Notes: generated by a model from the sequence alone, not told the origin. Shown: positions 12,068 to 50,944, numbered from the stretch's first letter. The stretch is DNA of 64,000 nucleotides from Ranitomeya imitator (GCF_032444005.1 NC_091283.1:715108001-715172000), one strand, 5' to 3'. Numbers and translations are program-made.

Positions 12068-14842
12068 CAGAGGCGTAGCTAGAGCTTTTGCCGCCCGGGG
12101 CTGTTCCCGAGTTTGGCGCCCCCCCCCCCCCGGCTCAATACACACAAAGGTTACCAAAAACGGTTTTCCTGTTTTGTAGAACTTAAACTGGGCCTAATGG
12201 TGTCACCCCCACATGCCACACCTGTGACTTAATACCACCACACCATGACCAGGCCACATAGTGACCGAATAATACTACATACAAGGGACAAATACCACAA
12301 CACCATTTCCAGACCACATATTACCACCACATAGTGACTGAATACTACAATACTGATCAGTAATAAAAAAAAACCCACAATACTATCACCATAAGTGCCA
12401 GTATTCACAGGAGATCTGTACTTAGTATGCAGTGTCTGTGTAGAGGTAATACAGTGATCACTGGTGACATTGTACACAGGACCGCTGTATATAGTATACA
12501 GTGTATAGTGTCAGTGTATAGGTAACACTGACTCACCAGTGACGTCTCTAGGTGAAGTCCTTCATCTTTCATCCAGCACAGACCGCCATCATTCCTTCCA
12601 GCCAGGACTCGTTTCTGCAGGAAATAACACAGTTATCTCGAGCTCCGCTTGCAGAACACATTACTTAATTTTTCACAACTTCTACATTACATCACATGAA
12701 GAAAAAAAGGTGATATAGTGTCACTCTGCACAGTAACAGGACCGCCCCCCCATTTAAAACAGTATACTCAAAAAATAAAATAAATACATCACTGCAGTAA
12801 TAATATCCCTTAATTAGCCCCTATGGTAATAATATTCCCCACCCTGGCCCCGTTTCTCATTCCTGGCTCCAGCCATATGTTCTCGCATCCTGCCCTCATG
12901 AGTATCCATTCTACCCCATATGATCTCCACATCCTGCCCCACCAGCCTCCATCGTATCCGTCCTGCCCCATGATCCAATCCTGCCCCGTGTCTCCAATCA
13001 TGCCCCGTATCTACATTCTGCCCATGCCTCAAGTCCTGCCCCCAGTGTGTCCAGCATATTACCCCCATGTTGTCCAGCAATCTGCCCCAGTGTGTCCAGC
13101 ATATTACCCCCATGTTGTCCAGCAATCTGCCCCAGTGTGTCCAGCATATTACCCCCAGTGTGTCCAGAAATCTGCCCCAGTATGTCCAGCACTGCCCCCA
13201 GTGTGTCCAGCAATCTGCCCCATGGTCTCCTGTATTGCCCCAGTGTGTCCAGCAATCTGCCCCAGTATGTCCAGCACTGCCCCCAGTGTGTCCAGCAATC
13301 TGCCCCATGGTCTCCTGTATTGCCCCAGTGTGTCCAGCATTCTGCCACATGGTCTCCTGTATTGCCCCAGTGTGTCCAGCAATCTGCCCCATGGTCTCCT
13401 GTATTGCCCCAGTGTGTCCAGCATTCTGCCACATGGTCTCCTGTATTGCCCCAGTGTGTCCAGCATTCTGCCCCATGGTCTCCAGTATTGCCCCAGTGTG
13501 TCCAGCAATCTGCCCCATGGTCTCCTGTATTGCCCCAGTGTGTCCAGCATTCTGCCACATGGTCTCCTGTATTGCCCCAGTGTGTCCAGCATTCTGCCCC
13601 ATGGTCTCCAGTATTGCCCCAGTGTGTCCAGCAATCTGCCCCATGGTCTCCTGTATTGCCCCAGTGTGTCCAGCATTCTGCCACATGGTCTCCTGTATTG
13701 CCCCAGTGTGTCCAGCAATCTGCCCCATGGTCTCCAGTATTGCCCCAGTGTGTCCAGCAATCTGCCCCATAGTCTCCTGTATTGCCCCAGTGTGTCCAGC
13801 ATTGCCCCAGCCCCAGACAGTCAGACATAAAGAAAAAAAAAAAAGTCCAATCCTGCCCCGTGTCTCCAATCATGCCCCGTATCTACATTCTGCCCATGCC
13901 TCAAGTCCTGCCCCCAGTGTGTCCAGCATATTACCCCCATGTTGTCCAGCAATCTGCCCCAGTGTGTCCAGCATATTACCCCCATGTTGTCCAGCAATCT
14001 GCCCCAGTGTGTCCAGCATATTACCCCCAGTGTGTCCAGAAATCTGCCCCAGTATGTCCAGCACTGCCCCCAGTGTGTCCAGCAATCTGCCCCATGGTCT
14101 CCTGTATTGCCCCAGTGTGTCCAGCAATCTGCCCCATGGTCTCCTGTATTGCCCCAGTGTGTCCAGCATTCTGCCACATGGTCTCCTGTATTGCCCCAGT
14201 GTGTCCAGCATTCTGCCCCATGGTCTCCAGTATTGCCCCAGTGTGTCCAGCAATCTGCCCCATGGTCTCCTGTATTGCCCCAGTGTGTCCAGCATTCTGC
14301 CACATGGTCTCCTGTATTGCCCCAGTGTGTCCAGCAATCTGCCCCATGGTCTCCAGTATTGCCCCAGTGTGTCCAGCAATCTGCCCCATGGTCTCCAGTA
14401 TTGCCCCAGTGTGTCCAGCATTGCCCCAGCCCCAGACAGTCAGACATAAAGAAAAAAAAAAAAAGTAAAATCCTCACCTCTCCCGTTCCTAGCGCAGGTC
14501 CGATGCAGTCAGCGTCTCTCCGGCTCTGCGACGCTCAGGACAGAGAGGCAGAGCGGCGCGCACAGTAGTGACGTCATCGCGCCCTCTGCTCTGAGACGTC
14601 GCAGAGTCAGAGGACGCTGTAGCTGCCGGCGCCGCAGGAACCAGGAGAGGTGAGTATAGAGCAGGGGGCGGGGTCCGGTGGTGGGGGGAGCTGGCCCTGG
14701 TCGTGGCGGCGGACGGCGCCGCCCGAAGATTTAAAGGGGCGTCTTTTTTTTTTTTTTTTTCTTCTCCTGCAGCGCCGGCCGCCCCCCGCATTGTGCCGCC
14801 CGGGGCGGACCGCCCCCCCGCACCCCCCTTCCTACGCCACTG
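12068..14842. mobile_element. Non-autonomous hAT element carrying a minisatellite
   Basis: Terminal inverted repeats (TIRs) CAGAGGCGTAG / CTACGCCACTG. 8-bp TSD ATTGCCAT at 12060-12067 and 14843-14850. Confidence 0.9.
12976..14466. repeat. 42-bp minisatellite within a higher-order duplication (blocks of about 870 bp and 620 bp)
   Basis: Unit CCCCAGTGTGTCCAGCAATCTGCCCCATGGTCTCCTGTATTG. The block start CAATCCTGCCCCGTGTCTCC occurs at about 12976 and 13848, and both blocks end in CCCCAGACAGTCAGACATAAAG(A)n. Confidence 0.92.
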
Positions 14843-15779
14843 ATTGCCATGTATAGTGCCCCATACAGATTTTTGGCATAAATAGTACCACTGGGTACAC
14901 CACTGTATGGAACAGAACAGTCTACCATGCTACTCCACATAATGAATGAAACTCTTTTGGTATATTTTACGTGAGACCTTATGTAAATGTTTAGTGTATG
15001 CATCCAGACCTTTTCCATGAAGGAACATGATGTGAACACATACTGTCCATGACGTGAAACGTGCCACATCTCTGACTGCCTGGCACACTGGCTATAAAGG
15101 ATTTACCAGAACAATAACCAGAAGTGTTTTGCTCTCAGATCTACTTTGGAAGCAGCAGCTCCGTAAGGGCTCAGTCACACTGGCAGATAATGCGGAAGAG
15201 TGCAATGTGAGAAGATCCCTTACTGCACTCTGACCAGTGTTATTTAATGAGGCAGAGCATGCCGCGATTGGCAGCATATCTCAGACGGCGGGCACCTATT
15301 CAAATCAGTGTGTGCGTGCAAAACATCGGACTGCATTCGGATGTCATCTGACTAATATCTCCTTCTTTTCCTCACTTGTAATCCAATTCTTGCATGCAAG
15401 AGGATCAGATAACAATAAAATGACACTCACCTCACGCTCACAGCCAAGCGTCATTAGCATATCGCACCCAATACTCTAATGTGATCTCAGCATTAGATCT
15501 GTAAAATAATTATTTAGTCTTTAACACATGAAAATTTTCTGACATTTTGTAATGAATACTATTTAGGAACTTGATTAATTTAGCATTTAGGGAGCAAATG
15601 CCCTTTAAATCTTTAGAACTATGCATCTAATCAGTATGTCTCAGAGCCAACCTCTCAATCACATTCCCTCTGATGTTAAAAGGATTGTCCTGGGTGTACA
15701 ATCATAATTGTAAAATAAGTCATCAGTATGGGATTGGTGCTGGTGTGACACTCAATACACCCACCTATTAGCTGATATA

Positions 15780-17660
15780 CAGTGGCATGTAAAAGTTTTG
15801 GCACCCCTGGTCAAAATTACTGTAATTGTGAACAGATAAGCAAGTTGAAGATTAACGGATCTCTAAAAGGTTTAAGGGTATGTTCACACGTTCAGGATTT
15901 CCATCCTTTTTTTTTCAGGACAGTTTTTTTAAAAAAACTGCAGCTCTTGGCAGAAAACGCAGGTCCTTTTTTTGTCCGTTTTTGATGCGTTTTTGATGCG
16001 TTTTTTGATGCGTTTTTTGATGCGTTTTTTTATCCTTTTTTTACTGTGTGTTTCCTAGGAAGCTTTTTAGGGCTAAANNNNNNNNNNNNNNNNNNNNNNN
16101 NNNNNNNNNNNNNNNNNNNNNNNNNNNNNNNNNNNNNNNNNNNNNNNNNNNNNNNNNNNNNNNNNNNNNNNNNNNNNNNNNNNNNNNNNNNNNNNNNNNN
16201 NNNNNNNNNNNNNNNNNNNNNNNNNNNNNNNNNNNNNNNNNNNNNNNNNNNNNNNNNNNNNNNNNNNNNNNNNNNNNNNNNNNNNNNNNNNNNNNNNNNN
16301 NNNNNNNNCCAATGGGGGTGACAAAGTGGGGGGGTGTCATTTACTATTTTTTTATTTTGATCACTGAGATCGGTTATATCTCAGTGATCAAAATGCACTT
16401 TGGAGCGAATCTGCCGGCCGGCAGATTCGGCGGGCGCACTGCGCATGCGCCCGCCATTTTGCAAGATGGCGGCGCCCAGGGAGAAGACGGCCGGACGGAC
16501 ACCGGGACGCCGGGTAAGTATAAGGGGGGGAGATTAGGGCACGGGGGGGCCTCGGAGCACTGGGGGGGGCATCGGAGCACGGGGGGGGGGCATCGGAGCA
16601 CGGGGGGGCGGGATCGGAGCACGGGGGGGCAGCCACACTCCGCCCACGCACTTCCGCCCGCTCCCCCGCACTTCCTGCTGCAGCAGTTCTGCACATCAAA
16701 TCGCAATAAAACCCGCAGATATATTTTTGATCTGCGGGTTTTACTGCGATTTTGACCTCACAATGGAGGTCTATGGGTGCAGAACCGCTGCGGTTCAGGA
16801 AGAAGAATTGACATGCTCCTTCTTTTTTCCGGGAGCAATTCAGCGCGTCTTTTTTTTTACAATTTCCGGACCATGTGCACAGTGTGTCCTGTTTTCCATA
16901 GGGTACAGTGTACTGTACCCTGCATGGAAAACAGCTGCGGAACCGCAGCGGCAAAACCGCCGCGGTTCCGCGGTAAAAAACGCACTGTGTGAACTTGGCC
17001 TAAGGTTAAATACAACACATTTCCTTTGTATTTTAAGCAAAATGAAAATACATTGTCTTTGTTTTTTCATTTTAAAAATTACAAAAAAGAAAATGGGTCA
17101 ATGCAAAAAGTTTGTCGAACCTCGGAACGCTCTGCTCAGATAACTGTGACCAAGGTTTCAATCCTTAATTAGCCTGTTAGGGTTATGGCTTGCTGACTAT
17201 CATCATGAGCAAATTTCCAAGCTTCATAAAAACCCAGCCCCCTCTAACCTTGTGACAAAAAAAACAGCAGCCTTGGGTTCTTCTAAGCAGCTGCCTAGCA
17301 CTCTGAAAAAGAAAATGGTGAACAGCCACAAAGCAGGTGAAGGCTATAAGAAGATAGCAAAGTGTTTTGAAGTAGCCATTTCCTCTGTTAGAAATGTAAT
17401 TAAGAAATGGGAACAACCATGGTCAAGATACGATCTGGAAGACCAAACAACATTTCAATTAGAGCTGCTTGTAGGATTGCTAGAGAGGCAAATCAGAACC
17501 ACTGCTTGACTGAAAAAAGCCTTAAGAAAGATTAAGCAAACTATAGAGTTGTGGTATCTTGTTCTACTGTTCAGAGACACATGCACAAATATGACGTTTA
17601 TGGAAGAGTCATCAGAAGAAAACCTCTTTCTGTTCTGCGTAGTGTGAGCATAGTGTGAGC
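15780..17660 (+). mobile_element. Tc1-like 5' fragment interrupted by a Harbinger-like composite (about 15875-17000)
   Basis: TA|CAGTGGCATGTAAAAGTTTTGGCACCCC terminus and an N-terminal transposase fragment (HKAGEGYKKIAKCFEVAISSVRNVIKKW, ORF 17252). The inserted block begins AGGGTATGTTCACACG. Confidence 0.65.
16078..16308. other. Assembly gap or masked run (231 N)
   Basis: Read directly from the sequence. Confidence 0.99.
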
Positions 17661-17789
17661 ATAGGGAGAGTGAAAGCAGCATATAGGAAGAGTTTGTGAT
17701 TACAAAAAGCTCTTTTAAGAGCTATTGAGAGTAAAGATTAGTTCACTGTTAGGTGGAGATAGCATTGGGAGAGATTTAATACAAGGGAA

Positions 17790-21580: not shown

Positions 21581-22023
21581 AGGGATTATCAGAGACAATG
21601 GTTATTTTTTCCTGTGGGGTTAAGAACTTGCTAACTACCTGCCTGTTCTACCAGTCAATGATTTATGCCATCACAGAGAGGTTACGCCGATTCTACTTCT
21701 TTCGATGACGTTGACAGAGCAGCATCTTCTCAACTGCTCTGCTCGGTTGTCGGTACGTCACTGATGAGGTGATGCTGATTGGCAGCAGCCTAACTGCAAG
21801 GAGCCAGCTATCAATCAGCATGACGTTGGCAGTGATGCCCAATTGACAGAGCAGAGCGTAAGAGAAGGAGCTGCTCTGTTAACGTGCGGTGAAATTAAGC
21901 AGGACAGTTTCTGCTGAGCCGCAAGAGATCATCACAGGGCAAAACAGGCAGCTAGTTTTCAACTTCCTGGTTGTAAGTTCTAAGTCACATAGGAAAAAAT
22001 ACCTTAAGTCCTGCATAATTCCT
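21581..22023. mobile_element. Kolobok/T2-family MITE
   Basis: TTAA|AGGGATTATC ... CATAATTCCT|TTAA. Confidence 0.7.
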
Positions 22024-23882
22024 TTAAATTTTATTCATTTCATGTTAAAAGACAACATCATGTTTCGGCTGTGCAATGCCTTTCTGAAGCCAGAACAGCC
22101 CTATTCCTGTTTGTGAATTCGGAACATCTTGCACATCCGAAACGTGATGTTACCTTTTATGATAAAATAAAACAAAAAGATAAGCTTCAACCATTTCATG
22201 ACATACGATGTAAATGTACAGCGCATGGAAGTACAAGAAAGAGGTATGCAAAACAGGGACGACCAAACAAGAGACGTTTTATAAAAGTATGATGAACATA
22301 TGAGAAGCAAACAAATGAAAAGCATTTTATAAAAGAAAACCAAACATGGCTCCCCAGAACCACAAGCCAAAACAACCTATGATATGGTTGCTAATGGTCC
22401 CAGAACAGGATTGTGGAGCATATAAAGTAGAGTTTATGTAAACATAAACATAAAAGAGCAAAAGAGCTAGGTGGAATAATATATGGGCAAGATTCAACAG
22501 AATCAAATCTAATGAAGGACAAGAAGACGGGAAAAAGATATATCCCATATCTCGTATGTACAGTATGCTAAATGCACAATGTCCTCAAGACATATATTAA
22601 TGCAAAGTATAATAGAGGCAGCAACTGAAACAAAAGTACAAAACCAACATGGACAATAGTAGGCAAAATAGCAAGTCAGAGAACAACAGCAAAAAATACT
22701 TAACATAATCTCTGGAATTTTTTTTACCAATTAAATAAAAAAGAACCTATACATGTTTGGTACATACAATCTTGTAATGACCTGAAGAATCATAATGGTA
22801 GGTCAGTTTTACCATTTGGTGAACATGGTAAAAAACAAAAGAAAACAATTGTGGAATTGCACTTTTTTTTTGCAATGTCACTGCACTTTGATTTTTTTTT
22901 CTTTTTTTCCAGTAGAAAATATGGTACAGGTGAATCTCACCAAATTAGAATATCATCAAAATGTTAATTTATTTCAATTCTGCAATACAAAAAGTGAAAC
23001 TCCTATATTAGATAGAGTCATTACAAATGTATTTCAATTCTGCAATACAAAAAATGAAACTCGTATATTAGATATAGTCATTACAAAGTGATCTACTGTA
23101 TTTCAAGTATTTATTTCTGTTAAGGATTATGGCTTACAGCTAATGAAAACTCAAAAGTCATTGTCGCAGTAAATTATGATACTTTATAACACCAGCTTGA
23201 AAAAATGATTTTAAGAGGGGGCGTGGCCTGAGCTCTGGCGATGTAGGAGGTAAGAGCTCTGAGCTCCCACTAAAGAACCCAAAAAGCGACGAAAAAAATC
23301 CACAAGAGGCATTTATTTATAATTTTTATTGAGTTATTATCCCTCTACAACAGAATTGGAACATTTTACTGTCAAAAAATGCTTTCAATCAAGAATTTTT
23401 ACTTCATAGAATGTAGGAGATAAAACCAGAGACAACATTTGAAAAGCGGAGGGATACCTTTACCTATTTTTATTTTTTTTTCTCACACCAGAATTCAACT
23501 TTAAGGTCAGTGCTTGCATTTTCCACCTAAGAGCCAATTGGACAGTTATCCCTGGTCATTTGGGTGCCCATATTGCTGAGATTTCTTTTTATTTGGGTCT
23601 CTTGTGCACTGAAACAGCATTCTTCCCTATGGTGTAAAGGCGGAGGGATACCCACTTCATATATTTTTTGACTGTAGGATATAATTAAATTGATGACCAG
23701 TGCACCTAGTTTTCACTCAGTGGACAACTTAGATTTATCATCCTGTCATTTTGACACATATATCTGAAAGATTAGAGGTGGCACAACCGAGATTTACCAG
23801 TAAAACCCGGCTGGAATACTGCACAGCTTAACAGCATTCTCACCTGAGGTAGAAAGTAGTTCCGGCAGCTCCATTTGACTTA

Positions 23883-24378
23883 AGGTACCGTCACACTTAG
23901 CGACGCTGCAGCGATACCGACAACGATCCGGATCGCTGCAGCGTCGCTGTTTGGTCGCTGGAGAGCTGTCACACAGACAGCTCTCCAGCGACCAACGATG
24001 CCGGTAACCAGGGTAAACATCGGGTAACTAAGCGCAGGGCCGCGCTTAGTAACCCGATGTTTACCCTGGTTACCATCCTAAAAGTAAAAAAAACAAACAG
24101 TACATACTTACCTACAGCCGTCTGTCCTCCAGCGCTGTGCTCTGCTCTCCTCCTGTACTGGCTGTGAGCACAGCGGCCGGAAAGCAGAGCGGTGACGTCA
24201 CCGCTCTGCTTTCCGGCTGACCGACGCTCACAGCCAGTACAGGAAGAGTGCAGAGCACAGCGCTGGAGGACAGACGGCTGTAGGTAAGTATGTACTGTTT
24301 GTTTTTTTTACTTTTAGGATGGTAACCAGGGTAAACATCGGGTTACTAAGCGCGGCCCTGCGCTTAGTTACCCGATGT
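23883..24378. mobile_element. PIF/Harbinger-like MITE, right end deleted
   Basis: TTA|AGGTACCGTCACACT start. Near-identical to 52694-53418 but stops at CCCGATGT, where L1 ORF2 resumes. Confidence 0.85.
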
Positions 24379-24645
24379 GTGTTGGAAAACTCTTCTTAAA
24401 CCTCCAAGAAAAATTTTTGACAAATCAGAGCAAATTATGAAATTTCCTCTTCATCTATTGGCATTGATATATGATCTTCCACTTTCAGAAATTTGGGCCA
24501 AATCAGGCATTAAAAAAGTTGGACATATCTATAACGGGAGGAATTTTCTCACCTTTAGCGAAATTAAGACTAAATTTAACTTACCCTCATCTGAATTAAT
24601 ATTCTTTTTAACCCTGAAAGAGCATATACAGAAATTACTGACTAG

Positions 24646-26508
24646 TAGTGTTGAGCATTCCGATACCGCAAGTATCGGGTATCGGCCGATACTTGCGGTA
24701 TCGGAATTCCGATACCGAGATCCGATACTTTTGTGATATCGGGTATCGGTATCGGATACATAGGGATCTGTAAAATAAAGAATAAAAATAAAAAATATTG
24801 ATATATTTACCTCTCCGGCGGCCCCTGGACTCAGCGCGGGTAACCGGCAGGCTTCGTTGTTCAAAATCAGCGCTTTTAGGACCTGAGAATCACGTCCCGG
24901 CTTCTGATTGGTCGCAGGCCGCCCATGTGACCGCCACGCGACCAATCACAAGCCGCGACGTCACCGCAAGCTATTGACGCGCTCATTTTTAAAAATGAGC
25001 GCGTTAATGGCTTTGAAAGACATAGCGGCTTGTGATTGGTCGCGTGGCCGCGACCAATCACAAGCCGCAACGTCACCGCAAGCTATTGACGCGCTCATTT
25101 TTAAAAATGAGCGCGTCAATAGCTTGCGGTGACGTCGCGGCTTGTGATTTGTCGCGGCCACGCGACCAATCACAAGCCGCTATGTCTTTCAAAGCCATTA
25201 ACGCGCTCATTTTTAAAAATGAGCGCGTCAATAGCTTGCGGTGACGTCGCGGCTTGTGATTGGTCGCGGCCACGCGACCAATCACAAGCCGCTATGTCTT
25301 TCAAAGCCATTAACGCGCTCATTTTTAAAAATGAGCGCGTCAATAGCTTGCGGTGACGTCGCGGCTTGTGATTGGTCGCGGCCACGGTCACATGGGCGGC
25401 CCGCGACCAATCAGAAGCCGGGACGTGATTCTCAGGTCCTAAAAGCGCTGATTTTGAACAACGAAGCCTGCCGGTTACCCGCGCTGAGTTCAGGGGCCGC
25501 CGGAGAGGTAAATATATCAATATTTTTTATTTTTATTCTTTATTTTACACCTCCCTATGGATCCCAGGGCCTGAAGGAGAGTTTCCTCTCCTTCAGACCC
25601 TGGGAACCATGAGAATACCTTCCAATACTTGATGTCCCATTGACTTGTATTGGTATCGGATATCGGTATCGGCGATATCCGATATTTTTCGGGTATCGGC
25701 CGATACTATCCGATACCGATACTTTCAAGTATCGGACGGTATCGCTCAACACTGTTGTGAATTCTGTGGCTGAGTTCACTTCTGTGGTCACAAGTGGTAT
25801 TGCAGTCTCTGGGCTTCCTCCCTCAGGTGTTTTGGTGAGCTCGTTGGCTGCCTTGCTATTTAGCTCCACCTGAGTCTGTCTTCCTTGCTCCTTGTCAATG
25901 TTCCAGTGTTGGATCTGAGCTACTGCATCTTTCCTTGGGCCTGCTGCTCTGCTAGATAAGTGCTTCTAGTTTGTTTTCTGTTTTTTCTGTCCAGCTTGCT
26001 ATTAACTTTTGCTGGAAGCTCTGAGAAGCAAAGGGGTGCTCCGCCGTGCTGTTAGTTCGGCACGGTGGGTCTTTTTGCCCCTTTGCGTGGTTTTCGTTTT
26101 AGGGTTTTTTGTAGACTGCATAGTTCTCTTTGCTATCCTCGCTCTGTCTAGAATATCGGGCCTCACTTTGCTGAATCTATTTCATTCCTACGTTTGTCTT
26201 TTCATCTTGCTAACAGTCATTATATGTGGGGGGCTGCCTATTCCTTTGGGGTATTTCTCTGAGGTAAGTCAGGCTTGTATTTCTATCTTCAGGCTAGTCA
26301 GCTCCTCAGGCAGTGTCGAGTTGCATAGGTAGTGATAGGCGCAATCCACTGCTGCTTATAGTTGTGTGAGGATAGATCAGGTACTGCAGTCTACAGAGAT
26401 TCCACGTGTCAGAGCTCGTCCTATTGTTTTTGGTTATTGCCAGATCTCTGTATGTGCGCTGATTACTGCACGCTGTGTTGCCTGATTGCCGGCCATAACA
26501 CAACACTA
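24646..26508. mobile_element. Non-autonomous hAT element (TAGTGTTGAGC termini)
   Basis: 8-bp TSD CTGACTAG at 24638-24645 and 26509-26516. Palindromic interior with alternating hairpin units of about 112 bp. The right TIR is interrupted by a solo LTR. Confidence 0.92.
25753..26500 (+). mobile_element. Solo LTR, related to the LTRs of the 42041-47791 provirus
   Basis: TGTTGTGAATTCTGTGGCTG ... CATAACA, with a 6-bp TSD CAACAC at 25747-25752 and 26501-26506. Confidence 0.92.
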
Positions 26509-29285: not shown

Positions 29286-30359
29286 GTACAGTTAAACTCC
29301 TTTCATAGGTTTCTTGGTGGGCTGAAACTACGTTTTTTAATCAGATTTCAGTGTCTATGAATGTGTAGGAAATATTCAAACTAAAAGCTGTTCCTAGAAC
29401 AATAAGGGAGTGTGTTTTCATGGTCTATCAATAGACTTTGTCAATTTTCCTTAACCCCTTCCCGACCCATGACGCCACGTAGGCGTCATGAAAGTCGGTG
29501 CCATTCCGACCCATGACGCCTATGCGGCGTCATGGAAAGATCGCGTCCCTGCAGATCGGGTGAAAGGGTTAACTCCCATTTCACCCGATCTGCAGGGACA
29601 GGGGGAGTGGTAGTTTAGCCCAGGGGGGGTGGCTTCACCCCCTCGTGGCTACGATCGCTCTGATTGGCTGTTGAAAGTGAAACTGCCAATCAGAGCGATT
29701 TGTAATATTTCACCCATTATAATGGGTGAAATATTACAATCCAGCCATGGCCGATGCTGAAATATCATCGGCCATGGCTGGAAATACTAGTGTGCCCCCA
29801 CCCCACCCCTCCGATCGCCCCCCCCACCCCCCCGATCTGGCCGGTACACTGCTCCGGCTCCCCTCCGTCCAGTGCTCCGCTCCCCCCCGTGCTCGTGTCC
29901 GCTCCCCCCGTGCTCCAATCACCCCCCCGTGCTTCAATCACCCCCCCTGCACTCCGATCCACCCCCCCGTGCTCCGTTCCACCCCCCCGTGCTCCGTTCC
30001 AGCCCCCCCGTGCTCCGTTCCACGCCCCCCGCGCTCCGTTCCACCCCTCCCGCACTCCGATTACCCCCCCCCGTGCTCCGATCCCCCCCCCCGTAATCCC
30101 CTCCACCCTATCATACTTACCGATCCAGCCGTGGTCCCGTCCGTCTTCTCCCGGGCGCCGCCATCTTCCAAAATGGCGGGCGCATGCGCAGTGCGCCCGC
30201 CGAATCTGCCGGCCGGCAGATTCGTTCCAAAGTGCATTTTGATCACTGAGATATGATCTATCTCAGTGATCAAAATAAAAAAAATAATAAATGACCCCCC
30301 CCCCTTTGTCACCCCCACAGGTAGGGACAATAAAAAAATAAAGACATTTTTTTTTTTCC

Positions 30360-30543
30360 NNNNNNNNNNNNNNNNNNNNNNNNNNNNNNNNNNNNNNNNN
30401 NNNNNNNNNNNNNNNNNNNNNNNNNNNNNNNNNNNNNNNNNNNNNNNNNNNNNNNNNNNNNNNNNNNNNNNNNNNNNNNNNNNNNNNNNNNNNNNNNNNN
30501 NNNNNNNNNNNNNNNNNNNNNNNNNNNNNNNNNNNNNNNNNNN
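30360..30543. other. Assembly gap or masked run (184 N)
   Basis: Read directly from the sequence. Confidence 0.99.
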
Positions 30544-30883
30544 GTATTCTGGTCCTCTGCGGATTTTTCCGCTGCGGATTTGATAAATCCGCAGTGCTAA
30601 ACTGCTGCGGATTTATGGCGGATTTACCGCGTTTTTTTCTGCGCATTTCACTGCGGTTTTACAATTGCGATTTTCTATTGGAGCAGTTGTAAAACCGCTG
30701 CGGAATCCGCACAAAGAAGTGACATGCTGCGGAATGTAAACCGCTGCGTTTCCGTGCAGTTTTTCCGCAGCATGTGTACAGCGATTTTTGTTTCCCATAG
30801 GTTTACATTGAACTGTACACTCATGGGAAACTGCTGCGGATCCGCAGCGTTTTCCGCAGCGTGTGCACATACCTTTAGAATTA

Positions 30884-33905: not shown

Positions 33906-34743
33906 CTGTATATACTTGTGTATAATCCGAGATTTTCAGCACAACTTTTTGTGCTGAAAATACCCCCCTAAGCTTATACACAAGTCAATTGTCCAGAACG
34001 CTGGCGGTGGAGGGGGTGCGGCGCCGGCTAACAGAAGACATCATACTCACCCTCCATCTCTGCATCTTCTTCCCTGTATTTCCCTTATCCCGGCGCCGGT
34101 GGCTCTGCTCAGCTCAGCAGTCACGTGGTACCGCTCATTAAGGTAATGAATATGAACGGGTCTCCACTCCCATGTGCATGGAGCGCATATTCATTACCTT
34201 AACGAGCGGTACCATGTGACCGCTGAGAAGAGGAGAGACACCGGTGCCGGGATAAGGGAGATGCAGGCGCAAGGAGGGTGACTATGATGGGGAGGGGGGC
34301 AATGTGAGCCATGCATACAACCAGGGGAATGGGGGAGCCGAGCCATGGGGGACGGGGGAGCTGAGCCATGGAGGACAAGGGAGCCGAGCCATATGGACTG
34401 GGGGAGCTGAGCAATGCTGGATCGGGGGAGCCATGCATACAACAGGGGAGCCACACATACCATTATAGGACAGGGGGAGCCACATACCAGAACAGGGCAG
34501 GGAGAGCCACATACCAGGACAGGGGGAGCCACACATAGCAGGACAGGACAGGGGGAGCCACATACCAAGACAGGACAGGGGGAGCCATGCATAGCAGGAC
34601 GGGACAGGGGGAGCCACAAACGAGGATGAGGGGGACAATGCATACCTGGCTTATATGCGAGTCAATAAGCTTACCCAGTTTTCCGTGGCAAAAGTAGGTG
34701 CCTCGGCTTATACTTGGGTTGGCTTCTACTCGATTATATACAG
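33906..34743. mobile_element. Tc1/mariner-superfamily (pogo/Tigger-like) MITE with a GA-rich minisatellite
   Basis: TA|CTGTATATACTTG ... CTCGATTATATACAG|TA, with repeated GGGGGAGCCACATACCAGGACA-type units at about 34280-34620. Confidence 0.7.
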
Positions 34744-37144: not shown

Positions 37145-37739
37145 ATAACATCTCTACTCTATTCATTCTCAATGGGACAGCAGGAGATGGCCAAGCACTG
37201 TGCTCTACAGCTGTTAGACATACCCAATAGGAAAGGTGCGCATGCTCGCCAACTGCTCCAATCCTCATTTTCAGGATCAGTAGGGGGCCTTGTTATTGAA
37301 CCTCATGCAATCAGGAACTTATTCCCTATCTCATGGATAGGGGATAACTTTCAATCTTTGTACAACCCCTTTGCGTCAATGCTATAACATGAAATTATAT
37401 TCTACATTGATCTTGAGTTCTCTACTGTACTTTATGTTTTTTCCTATCTTGACAAGGTGTTCCAATATTTAGGCTTGTTAGGTGGACATGACACCCAATT
37501 GCTTTTTTTCCTGTGTTTGCTTTCTCTTCTTGCACTTATAGTTTTTAGTTATACAATAGCTGCATCTTGTGCTACAATGTCCACAAAAATAATAACATAC
37601 CTACTCCTATAGGGATGCCTAATTATACTACTTTTTGTTGGTTAGATTTGTAGTCATTGTAGAGACTGGCATTCTTTCAATACTGTTTCAGCCTGCCCCA
37701 AAATAATTTTCCCACCAAACAGAAACACTACTTATTTAA

Positions 37740-38267
37740 AGGGAAACTGTCATCCCCAAAATCAAAGATGAGCTAAGCCCACCAGTATCAGGGGCTTATC
37801 TACAGCATTCTGTAATGCTGTAGATAAGCCCCCTATGTATCCTGAAAGATGAGAAAAAGAGGTTAGATTATACTCACCCGTGGGCGGTCCGATCCGATGG
37901 GCATCGTGGTCCGGTCCGGGGCCTCCCATCTTCTTACGATCACGTCCTCTTCTTGTATTCACACTGCGGCTGCGGCGCAGGCGTACTTTGTCTGCCCTGT
38001 TAAGGGTAGAGCAAAGTACTGCAGTGCACAGGCGCTGGGCCTCTCTGACCTTTCCCGGGGCCTGCGCACTGCAGTATTCCCTCAACAGGACATCATCATA
38101 AGAAGATGGGAGGCTCCGGACCAAACCGTGACGCCCATCGGACCGGACAGCAGCGGAACCGCCCCTGGGTGAGTATAATCTAACCTCTTTTTCTCATCTT
38201 TCAGGTTACATCGGGGGCATGCCGGTGGGCTTAGCTCATCTTCGATTTTGGGGGTGACAGGTTCCCT
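37740..38267. mobile_element. Kolobok/T2-family palindromic MITE
   Basis: TTAA|AGGGAAACTGTCA ... TGACAGGTTCCCT|TTAA, with arms inverted along most of the length. Confidence 0.9.
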
Positions 38268-39730
38268 TTAATAATAGCATACCTCTCAACTGTCCTGGAT
38301 CCAGTGGGACAGTCCTGAATTTGGTGAGCTGTCCCACTGTCATGGGACATAGGGATTATTTTCCAGCTTCAACTTCACCTGTTTCCTCAGATCACAGACA
38401 CAATGAAATACAATGGTGGAGAAGGGAAACAGATAGATCCTGGCATAACTATTCTGTCTATGTAAAGTTTAAAAGTCCTGCACTGACCTGCCAGCCATGT
38501 AACCTGAAAATGTTACACAACCTGGATGTCTAGGTAGATTTTCAGGCATTACCTAGGCTGGCAGCATATGAGGCCAGTAACACAGGAGCAAGGTTGTGTT
38601 AGATAGCCATTGTTATGCTTGTGTGGTGGTAGGACTTAGGCTATCACACTGTTTGTGGTGAAATGTACTGTGCAGGCATCATACTTGGTAAGGGAGACTG
38701 TGGTGGAATTATACTTTTGAGCGGAGAATTTATTGGACTGCAGGGACATCATACTCTGTGATAAGCAGAGAACCATACTTTGCATTAGGGAACGTACATT
38801 GTGGCATCATACTGTGTGGGGGGGAATGTAGTTTCTAGAGAGCGTGAAACTGTGTGGGGAAATAGGAGTGAGGAACAGACCGTGACAACATCATAATCTG
38901 TGTGGGGTGATGTTGGGTCATCATACGGTGAGTGTGGGAATGTACTGCTGAGAGACATAATACTGTGTAAGGAGGAATGTAATGTGAGGTAATCATTCTG
39001 TCTGTGGGTGAATGTAGTTTGTCAGCATCAGACTATGCATGTAAGGGAGCCTGTGAAGACATTGTACTGTGTGTTGAGGGGTACCGGAGAGAAACAATGA
39101 AAACAGTATTGCACTGTGTGAGAATATAATTTGTTAGAGAGGAGCAAATCAATGTGCTGCAAATTAAAATCAAATCAAATGTCCTGAAATTCTCCAGTTT
39201 TAGAATATTCAGAACAATATTCAGAATAATTTGCAATTTGATTAATGAGATTCGCAAAAAAAAAGTCAGCTCATCTATACTCCTATTTCCAACACTGGCT
39301 GCTCTTGTCAGGCACTGCTCTACAGCAGAGCTGGCGGCACTATGCAAGGAGAGCTGCAGCTGTAGATGTGTTTGTAATAAGACAGAGTTCATCTCTGCTG
39401 TACTGTGGTAGTTCGAATCATTACACTCAACCCTACAATGAGATCAGGAGAGGAGACCATCAGTCATTACAAGTATTACACTGGTAATGCCCCTTTTAAT
39501 TTAAAATAAGCTCTGGATGCAGATTCTCAGGAAGATTTACATCCGGGCAATGGATCTTAACACCTCATTTACATTTTAAGGAAAAAGGTGTGCTTCTCTG
39601 GAATAAGACATCGAATCATAGAAATTAGGATATCATTTTATTCTACTTCCTATAACGATTAATAGCACATTTTTCTTTTGTCACCCACGACAAACAAAGA
39701 GGGCAGTTTAAATATACAACTTATAATATA

Positions 39731-45700: not shown

Positions 45701-46900
45701 ATCACCATGTACCCCCTGACAACCCCAGCTGGATACCGACATGGAATTCCAATCCAATACTGGATTATGGGTTTGTAGCCATGGCAACCCCAACACGACC
45801 ACATCATGCAGATTATGCAACACCAGAAAGCGAATAACTTCCTGATGTGCAGGAGCCATGCACATGGTCAGCTGGGCCCAGTATTGAGGTTTATTCTTGG
45901 CCAAAGGTGTAGCATCAATTCCTCTCAATGGAATAGGACACCGCAAAGGCTCCAAGAAAAACCCACAACGTTTAGCATAATCCAAATCCGTCAGATTCAG
46001 GGCAGCGCCCGAATCCACAAACGCCATGACAGAAAACGACGACAAAGATCATATCAAGGTAATGGACAGAAGGAATTTGGACTGTACAGTACCAATGACG
46101 GCAGACCTAGCGGACCGCTTAGTGCGCTTAGGACAATCAGAAATAGCATGAGTGGAATCACCACAGTAGAAACACAGACCATTCAGACGTCTGTATTCCT
46201 GCCGTTCAACTCTAGTCATAGTCCTATCGCACTGCATAGGCTCAGGTTTAACCTCAGGCAGTACCGCCAAATGGTGCACAGATTTACGCTCGCGCAAGCG
46301 TCGACCGATCTGAATGGCCAAAGACAAAGACTCATTCAAACCAGCAGGCATAGGAAATCCCACCATGACATCCTTAAGAGCCTCAGAGAGACCGTTTCTG
46401 AACAAAGCTGCCAGCGCAGATTCATTCCACTGAGTGAGTACTGACCATTTCCTAAATTTCTGACAATATACTTCTATATCATCCTGACCCTGGCACAAAG
46501 CCAGCAAATTTTTCTCAGCCTGATCCACTGAATTAGGCTCATCGTACAGCAATCCGAGCGCCAGGAAAAACACATCGACACTACTCAATGCAGGGTCTCC
46601 TGGCGCAAGAGAAAATGCCCAGTCTTGAGGGTCGCTGCGCAAAAAAGAAATAATAATCAAAACCTGTTGAATAGGATTACCAGAAGAATGAGGTTTCAAG
46701 GCCAGAAATAACTTACAATTATTTTTGAAACTTAGAAACTTAGTTCTATCTCCAAAAAACAAATCAGGAATAGGAATTCTTGGTTCTAACATAGATTTCT
46801 GATCAATAGTATCTTGAATTTTTTGTACATTTATAACGAGATTATCCATTGAAGAGCACAGACCCTGAATATCCATGTCCACACCTGTGTCCAGAATCAC
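42701..46900 (-). pseudogene. gag-pol polyprotein with two in-frame stops and two frameshifts
   Basis: Gag CCHC (CFYCGDSTHAISDC), PR FVDSGAA, RT YLDD, RH VEVDASE, IN HHCC and catalytic core, chromodomain YLVKWKGY. TGA at 46049-46051, TAG at 44720-44722, an extra base in A8 at 43461-43468, and a small deletion at about 43340. Confidence 0.92.
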
Positions 46901-46999
46901 CCAAATGTCTAGGGGGGAAAAAAAAAAGTGAACACAGAGCAGAAAAAAAAAAATGATGTCAGAACTTTTTCTTTCCCTCTATTGAGAATCATTAGTTAG

Positions 47000-47008
47000 G
47001 CTCCTTGT
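47000..47008 (-). promoter_or_regulatory. Putative self-priming primer-binding site (PBS) of the provirus
   Basis: ACAAGGAGC lies 2 nt after the 5' LTR and is complementary to GCTCCTTGT in the LTR (47649-47657). No tRNA-type TGG PBS is present. Confidence 0.7.
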
Positions 47009-49375
47009 ACTGTTATGTTTGCTAATGACAGGTGTTATGAAGGCAATCCAGAAACACAGTGTGCTTAGCGATCAGAGCGCACACAGTGATCTGACAAATA
47101 CCCAAAAATACAAGAACGAGCTCTGAGACGTGGAAACTCTGTAGACTGCACACCTGATCCTATCCTAAACACAACTAAAAGCGGCTGTGGATTGCGCCTA
47201 ACAACTACCTAGGCAACTCGGCACAGCCTAAGAAACTAGCTAGCCTGAAGATAGAAAAATAGGCCTGACTTGCCCCAGAGAAATTCCCCAAAGGAAAAGG
47301 CAGCCCCCCACATATAATGACTGTGAGTAAGATGAAAAGACAAAACGTAGGGATGAAATAGATTCAGCAAAGTGGGGCCCGATATTCTAGGACAGAGCGA
47401 GGACAGTAAAGCGAACTTTGCAGTCTACAAAAAACCCTAAAGCAAAACCACGCAAAGGGGGCAAAAAAAAAACCACCGTGCCGAACTAACGGCACGGCGG
47501 TACACCCTTTGCGTCTCAGAGCTTCCAGCAAAACAAAAGACAAGCTGGACAGAAAAAAAGCAACAAAAAAGCAAAAAGCACTTAGCTATACAGAGCAACA
47601 GGTCACAGGAACAATCAGGAGAAGCTCAGATCCAACACTGAAACATTGACAAGGAGCAAGGATAGCAGCATCAGGCGGAGTTAAGTAATGAAGCAGTTAA
47701 CGAGCTCACCAGAACACCTGAGGGAGGAAGCTCAGAAGCTGCAGTACCACTTGTGACCACAGGAGTGAATTCAGCCACAGAATTCACAACACAGCACCAT
47801 CACTAGTAGAACCAAATGCAGGTCACACTTGGCAGGAGTATTAATGGGGAGAATGCAGAGAGCATGATGAAATATACATCATGTGATTAAATGCCCATTC
47901 TTCCACACACTCTTCCAAATTTGAAGGTTCTGTGGGCTCCTTCTACTAACTCTGATCTTTATTTTCTTCCATACATTTTCGGATTCGGGTCAGGTGATTG
48001 GCTGGGTCATTCTAACAGTTTTATTTTCTTTTTCTGAATCCAATTGAGATTCCTTGGCTTTGTGATTGGGATCATAGTCTTGCTAAAATGTCTACCCTTG
48101 TTTTATCTTCATCATCCTGCCTTGATACAGGTCAAATTTTGACACTTTATTAACTTTCCAGAAATCATTACAAAACCGTAATGATCTGTCCAACTTTGGA
48201 ATTAGTACAATGGATTAGCCGACTCACTCCTCAACTCCTCAATGACTCTTAGCTAGAGGATTTTGTCACCTCCTTCATGACAGCTTGTCTCCGGGCCTTC
48301 GTCACATGGTATGGTTTCATTTGTAACCTTACCGGAGGCTCGGTGACTATGTTATGTCAGATCACAGATATACAACCGGGCAGTTTCAAGAATTCGTCTG
48401 TATTCCGCTGCACTAAATTCCAACCCTCCCATCTCTGCTGTTTCTAGAGAGTGTTGCTTATCCTCACCTCATTTTCAATCTTTCCCGGGCTGGTTCCAGA
48501 GGGTCCAAAGAAGATACAACCGGAGTCGTATGCTACCATCTTCTGTATTATCCAGCATCTTTCCACTCATCTACTCCGTGACATCACCACTCTTCAGACT
48601 CTTCAAGTCACTCTATTCTCTATGTGTGAGCCAGAAGTCTCTTTTACAATGTAAGTCTATGGAGCTGTGTTCTGACGCCCCATAGGCTTTTTTTGGAAAG
48701 CCACTTTTGGGTCGCACAGAGCACTGTGTGACCTGAACATTCTGAAGAGTGGAGTGGCGCTGTATCCCGAAGAAGGTGATAGAAGATGAGTATATTAACG
48801 CACACAATAGTACCTACACAAATGCAAAGTCTTAGGGAAAATGGGGCTTCTTTATTGTGTTTTCCACTTCTTGTTTCACACCATAATAGTGTACTATGCG
48901 GTAGAAGAAACTACCTAGTGCTCCAAGAGTAGTAGTCTTCCCTATGTGCTCCTTCACAGTGTTGAAGCGCGCACTGTGTGCATCCTGCAGAGCAATGTTG
49001 CACACTGTGGATGCAGGATGCAGTTAAAAGTGGTGGTCACTCAGAAACTGGTTGCTTCCCGAATACTTAGTTCTAGTGATGCAACTGTTTTTGGGCTTAT
49101 TTTACAGTGGCTCTTCTAGAGAAATGTGATCTACGTTCATATTAGGCATTATACCCATAGTATTAATTACATTTTATTAAGTCTTTTCTGATGTCCCAAT
49201 AGGTTTCTTTTCTTACCATGCAAAAATGTTAACAAGCAGAAAGGAAGTTTAAAAATTATTGTTACTGTAAGTGAAGCAGTGAGTATATAGAGTTATTTTC
49301 ATCAGCAGTGTCCTAAGCATATATAACACTCTAAAAAAAGATAATTTATGACACTCATAACACCTTTATTTTCAG

Positions 49376-49492
49376 AACTCACATAGCGCCAAATTCACAG
49401 TGGATCGTCATAGCGGTGTTCTTCGTATCAAAGCCGGGGTGTCATTGGACTTTGAAAAAACAAGAACTCATTTTGTCACAGTCTTAGCCAAG
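49376..49492 (+). CDS. CDHR1: CDHR1 coding exon (117 bp; EC2)
   Basis: TTTATTTTCAG acceptor, AAG|GTAGGT donor. Encodes [39 protein letters not shown], matching the CDHR1 VDRHSGVLR...LDYE motif. Confidence 0.95.
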
Positions 49493-49980
49493 GTAGGTCC
49501 TTTGTTTTATTAACTTGATTATTCACATGGTGTTTGGTGTATACATTGAAGGTATTCCCCAACAAATGCAACTGTATAGCTATGCACAATGCATATGGAA
49601 TACAAGTGGCCCACTGTATAAAAAAGGACAATATGCAATTTTCTGAACAAAATTTTGGCCTTCATGGGGAAAAAAGGGGTCTTTGGCTGCATAGGATGTG
49701 TGCACCAGAAGCTTTCCATGTGAAAATGTTGACTGGAAATACAATGTAAATTCAGTTTAAGAGACAAAAAGGCACAAAAGACGATATAGTCTGGCACATG
49801 GTAGGGGGTGTCAACCGTGGCATTCTCAAAACAAAATCATGAGTAAAATAATTGGTGTTGTTTGGTATTTTGAATGTGTAAACAAGTGTTTTTTTTATAG
49901 TGTTTATTATAAGCAGTGCACAGTACAAGGAATGAAAGTGAAGGCTCTGGTGCCTGACTTAAGACGTGCCTCATCAGCAC

Positions 49981-50944
49981 AAGGGTTGAGCGAAACGGGT
50001 CGGCCATTTTCAGAAGTCGCCGACTTTTGGCAAAGTCGGGTTTCATGAAACCCGACCCGACCCCTGTGTGGGGTCGGCCATGAGGTCGGCGATCTTCTGA
50101 ATCTGGTATCGGAATTCCGATCCCGAGTTCCGATATGTTTGCAATATCGGAAATCGGTGTAGGAATCCATATTTAAGTGTAAAATAAAGAATTAAAATAA
50201 AAAATATTGCTATACTCACCCTCGGACGCGCCCTGGTACTAACCGGCAGCCTTCCTTCCTTAGAATCAGCGCGTGAAGGGCCTTAGATGACGTCGCGGCT
50301 TGTGATTGGTCGCGCGACCGCCCATGTGACCGCTCGCGCGACCAATCACAAGCCGCGACGTCACCAAAGGTCCTTCAAGCGCTGATTCTTAGGAAGGAAG
50401 GCTGCCGGAAAGAAGCAGGGCGCGTCCGAGGGTGAGTATATACCTAATATACCTAATAGGAATATACTCACCCTCGGACGCGCCCTGCTTCTTTCCGGCA
50501 GCCTTCCTTCCTAAGAATCAGCTCTTGAAGGACCTTCGGTGACGTCGCGGCTTGTAATTGGTCGCGCGAGCGGTCACATGGGCGGTCGCGCGACCAATCA
50601 CAAGCCGCGACGTCATCTAAGGCCCTTCACGCGCTGATTCTAAGGAAGGAAGGCTGCCGGTTAGTACCAGGGCGCGTCCGAGGGTGAGTATAGCAATATT
50701 TTTTATTTTAATTCTTTATTTTACACTTAAATATGGATCCCAGGGCCTGAAGGAGAGTTTCCTCTCCTTCAGACCCTGGGAACCATTGGAAACCCAATGC
50801 ACTGCATTGGGTTTCGAGTTTCGGCCGACCCCGACCCCGACTTTTTTTATAGGATCGGCCGATTTCACTCGACCCGACTTTTGAAAAAGTCGGGTTTTGT
50901 GAAACCCGACCCGATCCTATAAAAGTAAAAGTCGCTCAACCCTA
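49981..50944. mobile_element. Non-autonomous hAT element with a doubly palindromic core
   Basis: (A)AGGGTTGAGCG ... CGCTCAACCCTA, with an 8-bp TSD ATCAGCAC at 49973-49980 and 50945-50952. Confidence 0.92.

Follow-up and report, generated by a model that had tools for sequence, protein, structure and literature searches.

Palindromic transposon cores in a Ranitomeya imitator locus resemble small divergent CpG-island promoters with outward splice donors

Do the CpG-rich palindromes scattered through a stretch of the Ranitomeya imitator genome behave as mobile promoters, each with its own first exon? This idea came from a sequence-only reading of 64,000 nt of one strand (GCF_032444005.1 NC_091283.1:715108001-715172000; hereafter the window), in which motifs for housekeeping transcription factors were seen next to 5' splice sites. 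The modules are the internal, CpG-rich, near-palindromic parts of non-autonomous DNA transposons (Table 1), and every motif listed in that reading was recovered where it had been placed. The resemblance of the cores to small divergent CpG-island promoters with short first exons is real, and it goes further than first described: two additional cores of the same design, E (34.0-34.3 kb) and G (37.7-38.3 kb), had escaped that reading.

Table 1. Coordinates of the modules and their carrier elements in the window, with base composition of the cores
Feature	Coordinates	Strand	Region measured	GC	CpG o/e	Description
Core A	14465-14665		201 nt	0.63	0.96	degenerate palindrome, TGACGTCA on axis (14569-14576)
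Family B, copy B1	16309-16640	+	16321-16800	0.60	0.90	motifs, hairpins, donor, minisatellite
Harbinger MITE, copy C1	23882-24378	+	core, 187 nt	0.60	0.72	TTA target duplication on left; terminal repeat AGGTACCGTCACAC; truncated on right
hAT-type non-autonomous element D	24646-25753	+	core, 721 nt	0.55	1.48	terminal repeats TAGTGTTGAGC (left), GCTCAACACTG (right)
Family B, copy B2	29880-30359	-				mirror arrangement; hairpins, NRF1 and YY1 sites and donor as in B1
Core E	34043-34290					palindrome; GGTGAGTAT at 34043(-), mutated partner GGTGACTAT at about 34267(+)
Palindromic MITE G	37736-38275					outward GGTGAGTAT at 37870(-) and 38168(+)
hAT non-autonomous element F	49972-50945	+	core, 479 nt	0.58	1.23	terminal repeat (A/T)AGGGTTGAGC; 8-bp target duplication ATCAGCAC
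Harbinger MITE, copy C2	52696-53420	-				complete, about 725 bp; TAA target duplications on both sides

Two element types were confirmed: a Harbinger MITE with a TAA/TTA duplication and a hAT element with a duplication of 8 bp. The complete Harbinger copy ends as TAA-AGGTACCGTCACAC...GTGTGACGGTACCT-TAA, and it is short and non-coding, with the terminal inverted repeats and the 3-bp TWA duplication of PIF/Harbinger MITEs. In the truncated copy, the core (24104-24291) carries a CRE (TGACGTCA) at 24193, precisely where the 24017-24378 palindrome has its axis and 85-88 nt from each of two outward GGTAAGTAT donors at 24104(-) and 24283(+), in line with the distance of about 90 nt from each U1 site originally given. 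The axis of C2 reads TGCCGTCA in place of the CRE, which is lost, and both donors are kept (53009(-) and 53188(+)); the two copies show two differences mirrored on both arms, with the stem preserved. The only other TGACGTCA in the window is that of core A, found as first read between a variant donor (about 14472) and the 14649 donor. The former is a minus-strand GGTGAGGAT at 14470-14478, and the latter is a GGTGAGTAT followed by G-runs, a T16 tract and a CAG at about 14772. Cores A and C share distant homology (z 6.2).

The palindromic core of element D (24754-25564) includes a 112-bp unit repeated about four times and carries 10 CCAATCA, 4 TGACGTCG, CATGTGAC boxes and weakened donors (GGTAAATAT); its terminal repeats match, and no target duplication was visible, as another repeat abuts the element. 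Element F, bounded as ATCAGCAC-AAGGGTTGAGC...GCTCAACCCTA-ATCAGCAC, has the short terminal inverted repeats and 8-bp duplication of a hAT element and holds two palindromic units in its core (50211-50440 and 50463-50692), both ending in outward GGTGAGTAT, with donors at 50212(-), 50431(+), 50464(-) and 50683(+). Between the two inner donors, which point at each other, lie 25 nt; such a donor-to-donor junction is what would remain after an interior deletion from a parent carrying one module per end. The CCAATCA boxes earlier assigned to the hAT cores are indeed there: D and F together hold 13 of the 29 CCAATCA and all eight TGACGTCG of the window. The two cores are 80% identical overall and agree at every position of a 29-nt block that combines a CRE-like motif with CCAAT.

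Within 82 nt, family B brings together an exact NRF1 11-mer, a pair of YY1 sites, an ATG in Kozak context and a donor. In B1, two short hairpins are followed by TGCGCATGCGC (16440), CCGCCATTTT (16451), AAGATGGCGGC (16463, enclosing the ATG in Kozak context) and GGTAAGTAT (16513), and then, after the donor, by a 21-nt G-rich minisatellite (16543-16629). The mirror block that the sequence-only reading had put at 30113-30190 corresponds to B2, where TGCGCATGCGC lies at 30180(-), AAGATGGCGGC at 30157(-) and the GGTAAGTAT donor at 30113-30121(-). Identity between the two copies is 95.7% in the promoter block and 75.6% in the 'exon' part, and the donor is retained. Both assembly gaps adjoin the upstream side of this family: 132 nt separate the gap at 16078-16308 from the B1 motif block, and 170 nt separate the gap at 30360-30543 from the B2 block. 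All motifs and donors lie clear of the gaps. Since the homology extends to the gap edge in B1, the upstream boundary of family B is unread in both copies. MITE-like pieces of another type (16725-16950 and 30632-30849) lie beside B, on different sides in the two copies. Cores E and G, picked by their donors alone, carry GTCACGTGGT (34122) plus CCATGTGACCGC, and GCGCAGGCGT (37975) and AAGAAGATGGGAGG, respectively; 3' of each donor, G also has CTAAC, a pyrimidine tract and a CAG.

The feature that unites the cores is the donor. Against a chance expectation of 1.0 from dinucleotide shuffles of the window, GGTRAGTAT was found 15 times, and 14 of these occurrences bracket CpG-rich repeat cores. Each donor matches the 5' end of U1 snRNA perfectly over 9-10 nt and points outward, its exon side being purine-rich and its intron side U-rich or provided with G-runs; an ATG in AAGATG context lies upstream of it in B, E and G. 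Several of the 'mini-introns' 3' of donors measure only 34-36 nt, too short to splice, which counts against a promoter and leader-exon function. The candidates of U1 snRNA pseudogenes, rejected as similarity stops after ATACTTACCT, and of Pol III units ending at T-runs, dropped as A or B boxes were not seen, were both set aside, and no Rfam family matched at gathering score anywhere in the window.

Other motifs are likewise in excess: TGACGTCR was found 12 times (1.4 expected), GACCAATCAC 10 times (0.14), and the exact YY1 (AAGATGGCGGC) and NRF1 (TGCGCATGCGC) 11-mers twice each (0.04 and 0.02), all these counts, that of GGTRAGTAT included, being inflated by same-family copies (B1/B2, C1/C2 and D/F, with A distantly related to C). 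Among the cores, relationship is confined to A/C and D/F, and a single cassette common to all families was accordingly rejected; A and C being distantly related, the cores fall into five independent families. Motif density was 10.4 per kb in the seven cores first described versus 0.75 per kb in the remaining window, and all nine cores (2,574 nt) hold 23 of the 67 matches, or about 8.9 per kb. A motif from a fixed panel of 10 CpG-island promoter motifs is present in 5/5 independent donor-bracketed families, about 50-100 nt inside a donor, and in the central 200 nt of 0/6 donor-less palindromes. The sequence-only reading had cautioned that GC-rich inverted repeats yield CRE and NRF1 sites more easily by chance, and had called for a comparison with matched shuffled palindromes. 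In composition-matched palindromised shuffles of each core, the probability of at least one panel match was lowest for C (0.08) and highest for G (0.23), with A and E at 0.11 and F at 0.18; none of these is individually significant. Family B, in contrast, is clearly non-random, with P = 0.016 (palindromised) and P = 0.001 (plain shuffles) for at least the observed number of matches. CRE and NRF1 sites, being palindromes, are favoured on a palindrome axis, which also tells against a promoter.

CpG o/e reaches 0.7-1.5 in the cores versus 0.51 on average in the window, and CpG-island composition (at least 200 bp, GC at least 0.5, CpG o/e at least 0.6) holds for the regions measured in Table 1, core C (187 nt) being slightly short. 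CpG transitions make up 0/7 of the inter-copy differences in B, 1/30 between D and F and 0/5 in the C core, with no elevation between diverged copies; these numbers are small and give at most an indirect hint of an unmethylated germline state. As RNA, the core folds at -190 kcal/mol (z -24); because this hairpin is so stable, a donor would be masked unless transcription begins inside the core, and the folding thus predicts a free donor only in RNA starting within it.

Expression was approached through 19 sequencing runs, all available as Logan contigs and none on record as RNA. Contigs from four runs were aligned over 23600-25900; in these contigs, which drop rare forms and cannot show RNA starts, neither a GT-AG joint nor a loose end at a donor was seen, nor any pile-up of starts or ends. 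The best-supported breaks are transposon ends, many contigs breaking at 23880-23884, the left end of C1. Contig starts at 24806 and 24810, beside a donor, are explained by low-complexity sequence (24770-24805) skipped in the alignment. No autonomous element with such a module was found within the window. Metagenome and viral-contig scans with the conserved hAT-core block, the hAT arm and the family B block gave no matches, and an exact look-up of the window's Tc1 transposase returned no record. Relatives of the window's hAT transposase, at most 59% identical, come from dendrobatid and other frogs; the loci of two of them, in Mantella (27.8 kb) and Eleutherodactylus coqui (20.8 kb), contain 0 and 1 GGTRAGTAT, respectively, and show no similarity to any core, as a rough outside control only.

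Our tentative explanation, to which we give somewhat less than an even chance, is that the modules are transposon-borne promoter and leader-exon units carried into deletion derivatives. The core would read as a small, divergent, CpG-island-type RNA polymerase II promoter, with binding-site-like motifs for ubiquitous factors (CREB/ATF, NRF1, YY1, NF-Y, E-box) in its middle, where we infer that such factors may bind and transcripts start, and an outward U1-matching donor about 50-100 nt on either side of the putative promoter centre. Autonomous relatives, from which the modules presumably descend, would express their genes via such a module and a spliced leader, and deletion derivatives would then carry the modules along, duplicating them in mirror image. 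Each insertion would thus be a latent two-way promoter plus splice donor that could start transcripts spliced to host exons further downstream; RNA merely reading through the element would have its donor buried in the very stable hairpin. The donor excess, the recurrence of a panel motif in all five families, the family B block and the CpG o/e speak for this explanation, as do the identical D/F block, the donor-to-donor junction of F, the outer hAT repeats, the masked donor and the nematode and Xenopus MITE precedents (see below), together with the lack of a central panel motif in donor-less palindromes. Against it stand the per-core P values of 0.08-0.23, the loss of the CRE in C2, the lack of an autonomous element in the window and the contigs, with neither joint nor loose end at a donor and with their best breaks at transposon ends; moreover, a cut-and-paste non-autonomous element needs no transcription. 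A plainer variant, deletion derivatives with inward promoters at both ends, fits the centre of F and was rejected for C, whose donors diverge from one axis. Overall, the proposal of mobile promoter and first-exon units is only partly supported: the likeness to a promoter holds, while the shuffles are clear in B alone, one Harbinger copy is without a CRE and the expression data are limited to contigs.

Perhaps what counts is the hairpin and the two very strong U1 snRNP sites, and not a promoter: inserts might thereby be rendered harmless within introns of host genes, or cryptic polyadenylation signals of the A/T-rich arms be suppressed, and the transcription-factor motifs would be by-products of CpG-rich palindromes. 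Matched shuffles do yield a panel motif in 8-23% of cores, leaving most matches unremarkable, and the donor 9-mer is the sole feature common to all families, retained at both positions in C2 even where the CRE is not. D and F have two or three AATAAA per strand just upstream of the core and a sense U1 site beyond; in the HIV-1 5' LTR, a donor so placed silences the upstream poly(A) site. However, the arms of A, C and G are devoid of canonical AATAAA, the read-through donor is paired in the -190 kcal/mol stem and hard for U1 to reach, and neither the exact NRF1 and YY1 11-mers of family B, nor CpG o/e above 1, nor the perfectly conserved CRE/CCAAT block of D and F is accounted for, so that we consider this possibility rather unlikely. 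It is highly doubtful that the modules, B above all, are captured pieces of host housekeeping genes, each comprising a promoter, the first exon and the beginning of intron 1, and having no role in the transposon. B does look like a gene 5' end, in that its NRF1/YY1 sites overlap the Kozak ATG and 16 open codons lead to a consensus donor and then G-runs, and it adjoins the pieces of a different MITE type; yet a 1-nt indel after codon 4 breaks the frame between B1 and B2, and five separate captures would be required, each made palindromic with the same 9-mer at both ends.

Transposition itself offers another source of constraint. hAT transposases bind short repeated subterminal motifs, ZBED1, a hAT-derived factor, binds a TCGCGA-type site, and the hAT cores consist of GGTCGCG...CGCGACC and GACCAATCAC units that recur in either orientation; the mirrored differences between C1 and C2, with the stem kept, would also suit cores that serve in cis as transposase or host-factor sites or as a cruciform palindrome, their promoter likeness being accidental. 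There is only a slim chance of this, as the outer arms, within 100-250 bp of the ends of F and D, already hold typical short subterminal repeats (GTCGG, TATCGG), and the core is therefore not needed to explain transposase binding; in addition, the same architecture occurs in different superfamilies with different transposases, and the outward donors are left unexplained. Pure coincidence in GC-rich inverted repeats, which the per-core P values for any panel motif (0.08-0.23) would allow, is scarcely credible given the 15 GGTRAGTAT (1.0 expected), which all point outward and are spread over five or more unrelated families, the exact 11-mers of B expected 0.02-0.04 times, and the 0/6 donor-less palindromes with a central motif.

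Promoter-carrying transposons are already known among retroelements and, in nematodes, among MITEs. Sleeping Beauty T2/Onc is an engineered activation-tagging/gene-trap transposon. Like the frog modules it places a promoter and then a splice donor inside a cut-and-paste transposon, whose insertions can drive host exons; it is man-made and one-directional, whereas the frog modules, as far as their sequence tells, are natural and palindromic. Introner-like DNA transposons, reportedly described by Huff in 2016 and Gozashti in 2022 as creating introns, are also non-autonomous and bear consensus splice sites, but they carry or create a donor and an acceptor at opposite ends, the whole element being spliced out; here the donors point outward from the centre on both strands, and there is no acceptor at the opposite end. 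Vertebrate bidirectional CpG-island promoters and their U1-PAS axis, said to have been characterized by Xie in 2005 and Almada in 2013, share with the cores the NRF1, YY1, CRE, NF-Y and E-box motifs, a CpG o/e around 1 and a 5' splice site a short way downstream of the putative start in each direction, but real ones are single-copy and not perfect palindromes, and it is their start sites and lack of methylation that define them. Transposable elements have been described beside such promoters (PMC2777200). In Caenorhabditis elegans, MITEs supply a third of germline promoters, and CERP2/CELE2 are, like the frog elements, small non-autonomous DNA transposons with a promoter-like motif arrangement spread by transposition (PMC9757741). 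Nematode activity was demonstrated by accessibility, nuclear RNA and the dedicated factor HIM-17, whereas the frog modules are known from sequence only; their motifs are those of ubiquitous vertebrate CpG-island factors, and they also have outward splice donors, which are not reported for the nematode elements. In Xenopus tropicalis, hAT, Harbinger and Kolobok MITEs, of a frog host and the same superfamilies, are enriched in transcription-factor sites and lie at liver-specific open chromatin (PMC12676858); in contrast to the present cores, they are distal, tissue-specific and enhancer-like, were selected as non-promoter regions, and are not described as having a CpG-rich palindrome or a splice donor. 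In the literature, we found no report of vertebrate cut-and-paste elements that combine a design common to several superfamilies, a CpG-island-type core and outward U1 sites.

A more far-reaching scenario, which we regard as distinctly unlikely, is that unrelated superfamilies in this frog lineage each acquired or exchanged a palindromic promoter and donor cassette; active in the germline or early embryo, it would keep the element unmethylated and accessible to transposase and act as a natural two-way activation tag, having seeded first exons and chimeric transcripts in great number throughout a large genome, while the hairpin would hide the donors from host pre-mRNAs. If the cores do not fire, the recurrent outward donors still demand an explanation. 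If they do, every insertion would be a potential new first exon in either direction, which would suggest a selfish rationale, that of staying unmethylated and accessible, and would offer a way, open to direct testing, in which promoters are born and chimeric transcripts arise in large amphibian genomes.

The sequence-only reading had proposed that the palindromic cores of several MITEs may be mobile, bidirectional promoter and first-exon units, and every motif on which it drew was confirmed at its position. The 5' splice site GGTRAGTAT (hereafter the donor), which faces outward from the cores, was found 15 times in the window against 1.0 expected, TGACGTCR 12 times (1.4 expected), AAGATGGCGGC twice (0.04), TGCGCATGCGC twice (0.02) and GACCAATCAC 10 times (0.14). 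Self-comparison of the window revealed that many of these motifs are copies of each other: identity reaches 86% between B1 (16313-16630) and B2 (30317-30002), 98% between C1 (23882-24378) and C2 (53419-52921), and about 80% between D (24.6-25.8 kb) and F (50.0-50.9 kb). Cores A and C share an ordered and significant similarity (z 6.2), and a search with the donor 9-mer alone recovered two palindromes absent from the earlier reading, E and G. Because A is related to C and D to F, with B, E and G standing apart, the cores can be assigned to five independent families, {A, C}, {B}, {D, F}, {E} and {G}.

Positions of cores, carrier elements and neighbouring features in the window
Feature	Position	Strand	Description
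Tc1 element	10-1032	-	
Minisatellite	13063-14428		adjoins core A on its left
A	14465-14665		core
N run	16078-16308		assembly gap
B1	16309-16640	+	copy of family B
C1	23882-24378	+	copy of C
D	24646-25753	+	related to F
Hairpin chain	29440-29790	-	past the B2 minisatellite
B2	29880-30359	-	copy of family B
N run	30360-30543		assembly gap
E	34043-34290		palindrome, carries GTCACGTGGT
G	37736-38275		palindrome, carries GCGCAGGCGT and AAGAAGATGG
Gypsy element	43.4-46.9 kb		
F	49972-50945	+	related to D
C2	52696-53420	-	copy of C
Tandem array	58560-59340		downstream of the hAT transposase gene
hAT transposase gene	61.9-63.9 kb		

The window (GC 0.44, CpG o/e 0.51) is transposon-dense and rich in non-autonomous palindromic elements; its hAT transposase has its nearest relatives in dendrobatids and other anurans. 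The Tc1/Sleeping-Beauty-type transposase ORF is unbroken over 340 aa, with HTH and DDE_3 domains, and may be part of a young, intact copy. The minisatellite beside core A has a C-rich 42-bp unit, arranged as one array of about 18 and another of about 12 copies (90-91% matches), and the tandem array, in which 'ACCAGCTGACGGTRCTGGAAC' recurs, has a period of about 66 or about 198 nt.

A common layout was apparent in all five families, consisting of a single GC-rich core unit of 170-300 nt with an outward donor at both ends; the D core, at about 720 nt, exceeds this range owing to repetition of its unit. CpG o/e is 0.7-1.5 across the cores, D included, the purine fraction on the exon side of the donors is 0.50-0.85 against a background of 0.50, and the intron side is U-rich or G-run-rich. 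In the carrier elements C, D and F, the promoter-like sequence sits internally as a module, the left and right outer arms being different. C is classified here as a PIF/Harbinger MITE; C2 is complete, with TAA on either side of AGGTACCGTCACAC...GTGTGACGGTACCT, C1 is flanked by TTA on the left, and contigs from many other copies break at its left end (23880-23884). Contigs of 495-1164 nt from three runs cover the low-copy sequence to the left of C1 (23600-23882); their match ends precisely at the edge of the MITE, 23882, beyond which they continue into sequence absent from the compared stretch, and this may reflect either a polymorphic insertion or a graph artefact. F belongs to the hAT non-autonomous elements; it shows the terminal repeat (A/T)AGGGTTGAGC and an 8-bp target duplication, ATCAGCAC, and the ends of D are related to its own. 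Two modules abut donor-to-donor in F, with 25 nt between them, a layout that would be left by an interior deletion in a parent whose two ends each bore a module.

Promoter motifs were scored with a fixed panel of ten (NRF1, E-box, ETS, ZNF143, NF-Y, SP1, AP1, M8, CRE and YY1), its source being Xie et al. 2005, where these are reportedly over-represented in vertebrate promoters. Matches occur at 10.4 per kb in the seven cores recognised initially and at 0.75 per kb in the remainder of the window. Once E and G are included, 23 of the 67 matches in the window fall within the nine cores, which total 2,574 nt and thus have about 8.9 matches per kb. As a matched control, one arm of each core was shuffled at its dinucleotide content and mirrored, yielding a rebuilt palindrome. 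In this comparison, which the sequence-only reading had itself proposed, B alone stands apart (probability of at least as many hits as observed, 0.016 with palindromised and 0.001 with plain shuffles); for the remaining cores tested, at least one panel hit arose in the shuffles with a probability of 0.11 for A, 0.08 for C, 0.18 for F, 0.11 for E and 0.23 for G. Core by core, the enrichment is weak, B being the only family for which it is convincing. Six donor-less palindromes served as a natural control: panel motifs are missing from the central 200 nt of all six, and CpG o/e is below 0.6 in most of them. The resulting pattern, five of five families versus none of six controls, is suggestive.

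Family B counts as promoter-type sequence by any standard, be it the transposon's own or captured from a host gene. A stretch of 82 nt combines a perfect palindromic NRF1 site, an inverted YY1 pair, an ATG that lies inside AAGATGGCGGC in Kozak context and is followed by 16 open codons, and the donor, GGTAAGTAT, with G-runs after it. The hairpin-NRF1-YY1 block is 95.7% identical between B1 and B2, and from this block to the donor identity is 75.6%, with frame-breaking indels and the donor kept. Both N runs adjoin B on its upstream, hairpin side, and B1-B2 homology reaches the gap edge in B1; neither gap is crossed by a motif or donor, the nearest being 132 and 170 nt off. B1 is flanked on its donor side by fragments of a different type of MITE, and such fragments also occur beyond the gap next to B2. 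The two copies have opposite orientations and are separated by 14 kb, and the assembly breaks at matching points directly upstream of the hairpins in both; this coincidence of the breaks suggests a hard-to-assemble feature, possibly a palindrome axis or a homopolymer. The nearby chain comprises five or six short perfect hairpins and ends at TTAA; one hairpin has an inverted CCAAT pair and two have inverted CATGACGCC half-CRE pairs.

Comparison of diverged copies revealed a block, TGACGTCGCGGCTTGTGATTGGTCGCG, that is 100% identical over 29 nt between D and F, whose cores are about 80% identical overall. Of the differences between copies, none of 7 was a CpG transition in B, 1 of 30 in the comparison of D with F, and none of 5 in the C core; although these numbers are small, such unelevated rates would fit a lineage unmethylated in the germline. 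The CRE placed by the sequence-only reading on the Harbinger palindrome axis is present in C1 and in the contig majority, while C2 has TGCCGTCA instead. In the contigs of four runs, most family C sequence has both the CRE and the donors, with no variant at 10% or above at 24193-24200, 24104-24112 or 24283-24291. C1 and C2 differ at nine places, and two of these changes recur in mirror image on the opposite palindrome arm (24085/24301 and 24100/24295, compared with 52921-53284), so that the stem stays paired. Most contigs of the family have the 24100 G>C variant. Arm homogenisation or selection for the hairpin is suggested by these observations.

We rank as most likely, albeit tentatively, that the cores are putative promoter and leader-exon modules carried by transposons, which deletion derivatives would have inherited and which would have a latent capacity to act as promoters in both directions and as splice donors. 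A less likely alternative sees in them modules of U1 sites and a hairpin, with the factor motifs as by-products. Folded as RNA, the C core forms a near-perfect hairpin (-190 kcal/mol, z -24), and in a read-through transcript each donor would therefore be paired with its own complement; it would be free only in a transcript starting inside the core, which speaks more for the first-exon reading than for a role in host pre-mRNA. Contigs were available from 19 runs, none recorded as RNA, and four runs were compared with 23600-25900, where they mark transposon ends. No GT-AG joint or well-supported loose end was seen at a donor in these four runs' contigs, in which rare forms are dropped and starts are invisible, and this is weak evidence against frequent donor use.

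Captured host 5' ends, an explanation concerning mainly B with its ATG and open codons, are improbable, and cis-acting transposition sequences slightly more so; the hAT arms already hold short repeats, GTCGG and TATCGG, as expected for transposase binding. Coincidence is very improbable.

In Caenorhabditis, MITEs have an established role as promoters (PMC9757741), and in Xenopus their presence at tissue-specific open chromatin is established (PMC12676858). Introner elements also contain splice sites, but in an arrangement that differs from the outward donors described here, and our literature search found no report of this combination of features. GGTRAGTAT was absent from a Mantella aurantiaca locus (L001, 27.8 kb) and occurred once in an Eleutherodactylus coqui locus (L002, 20.8 kb), neither of which showed similarity to any core. 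Since both loci are nearly without the donor 9-mer and lack core similarity, the density of these cassettes in the Ranitomeya imitator window may be lineage-specific.
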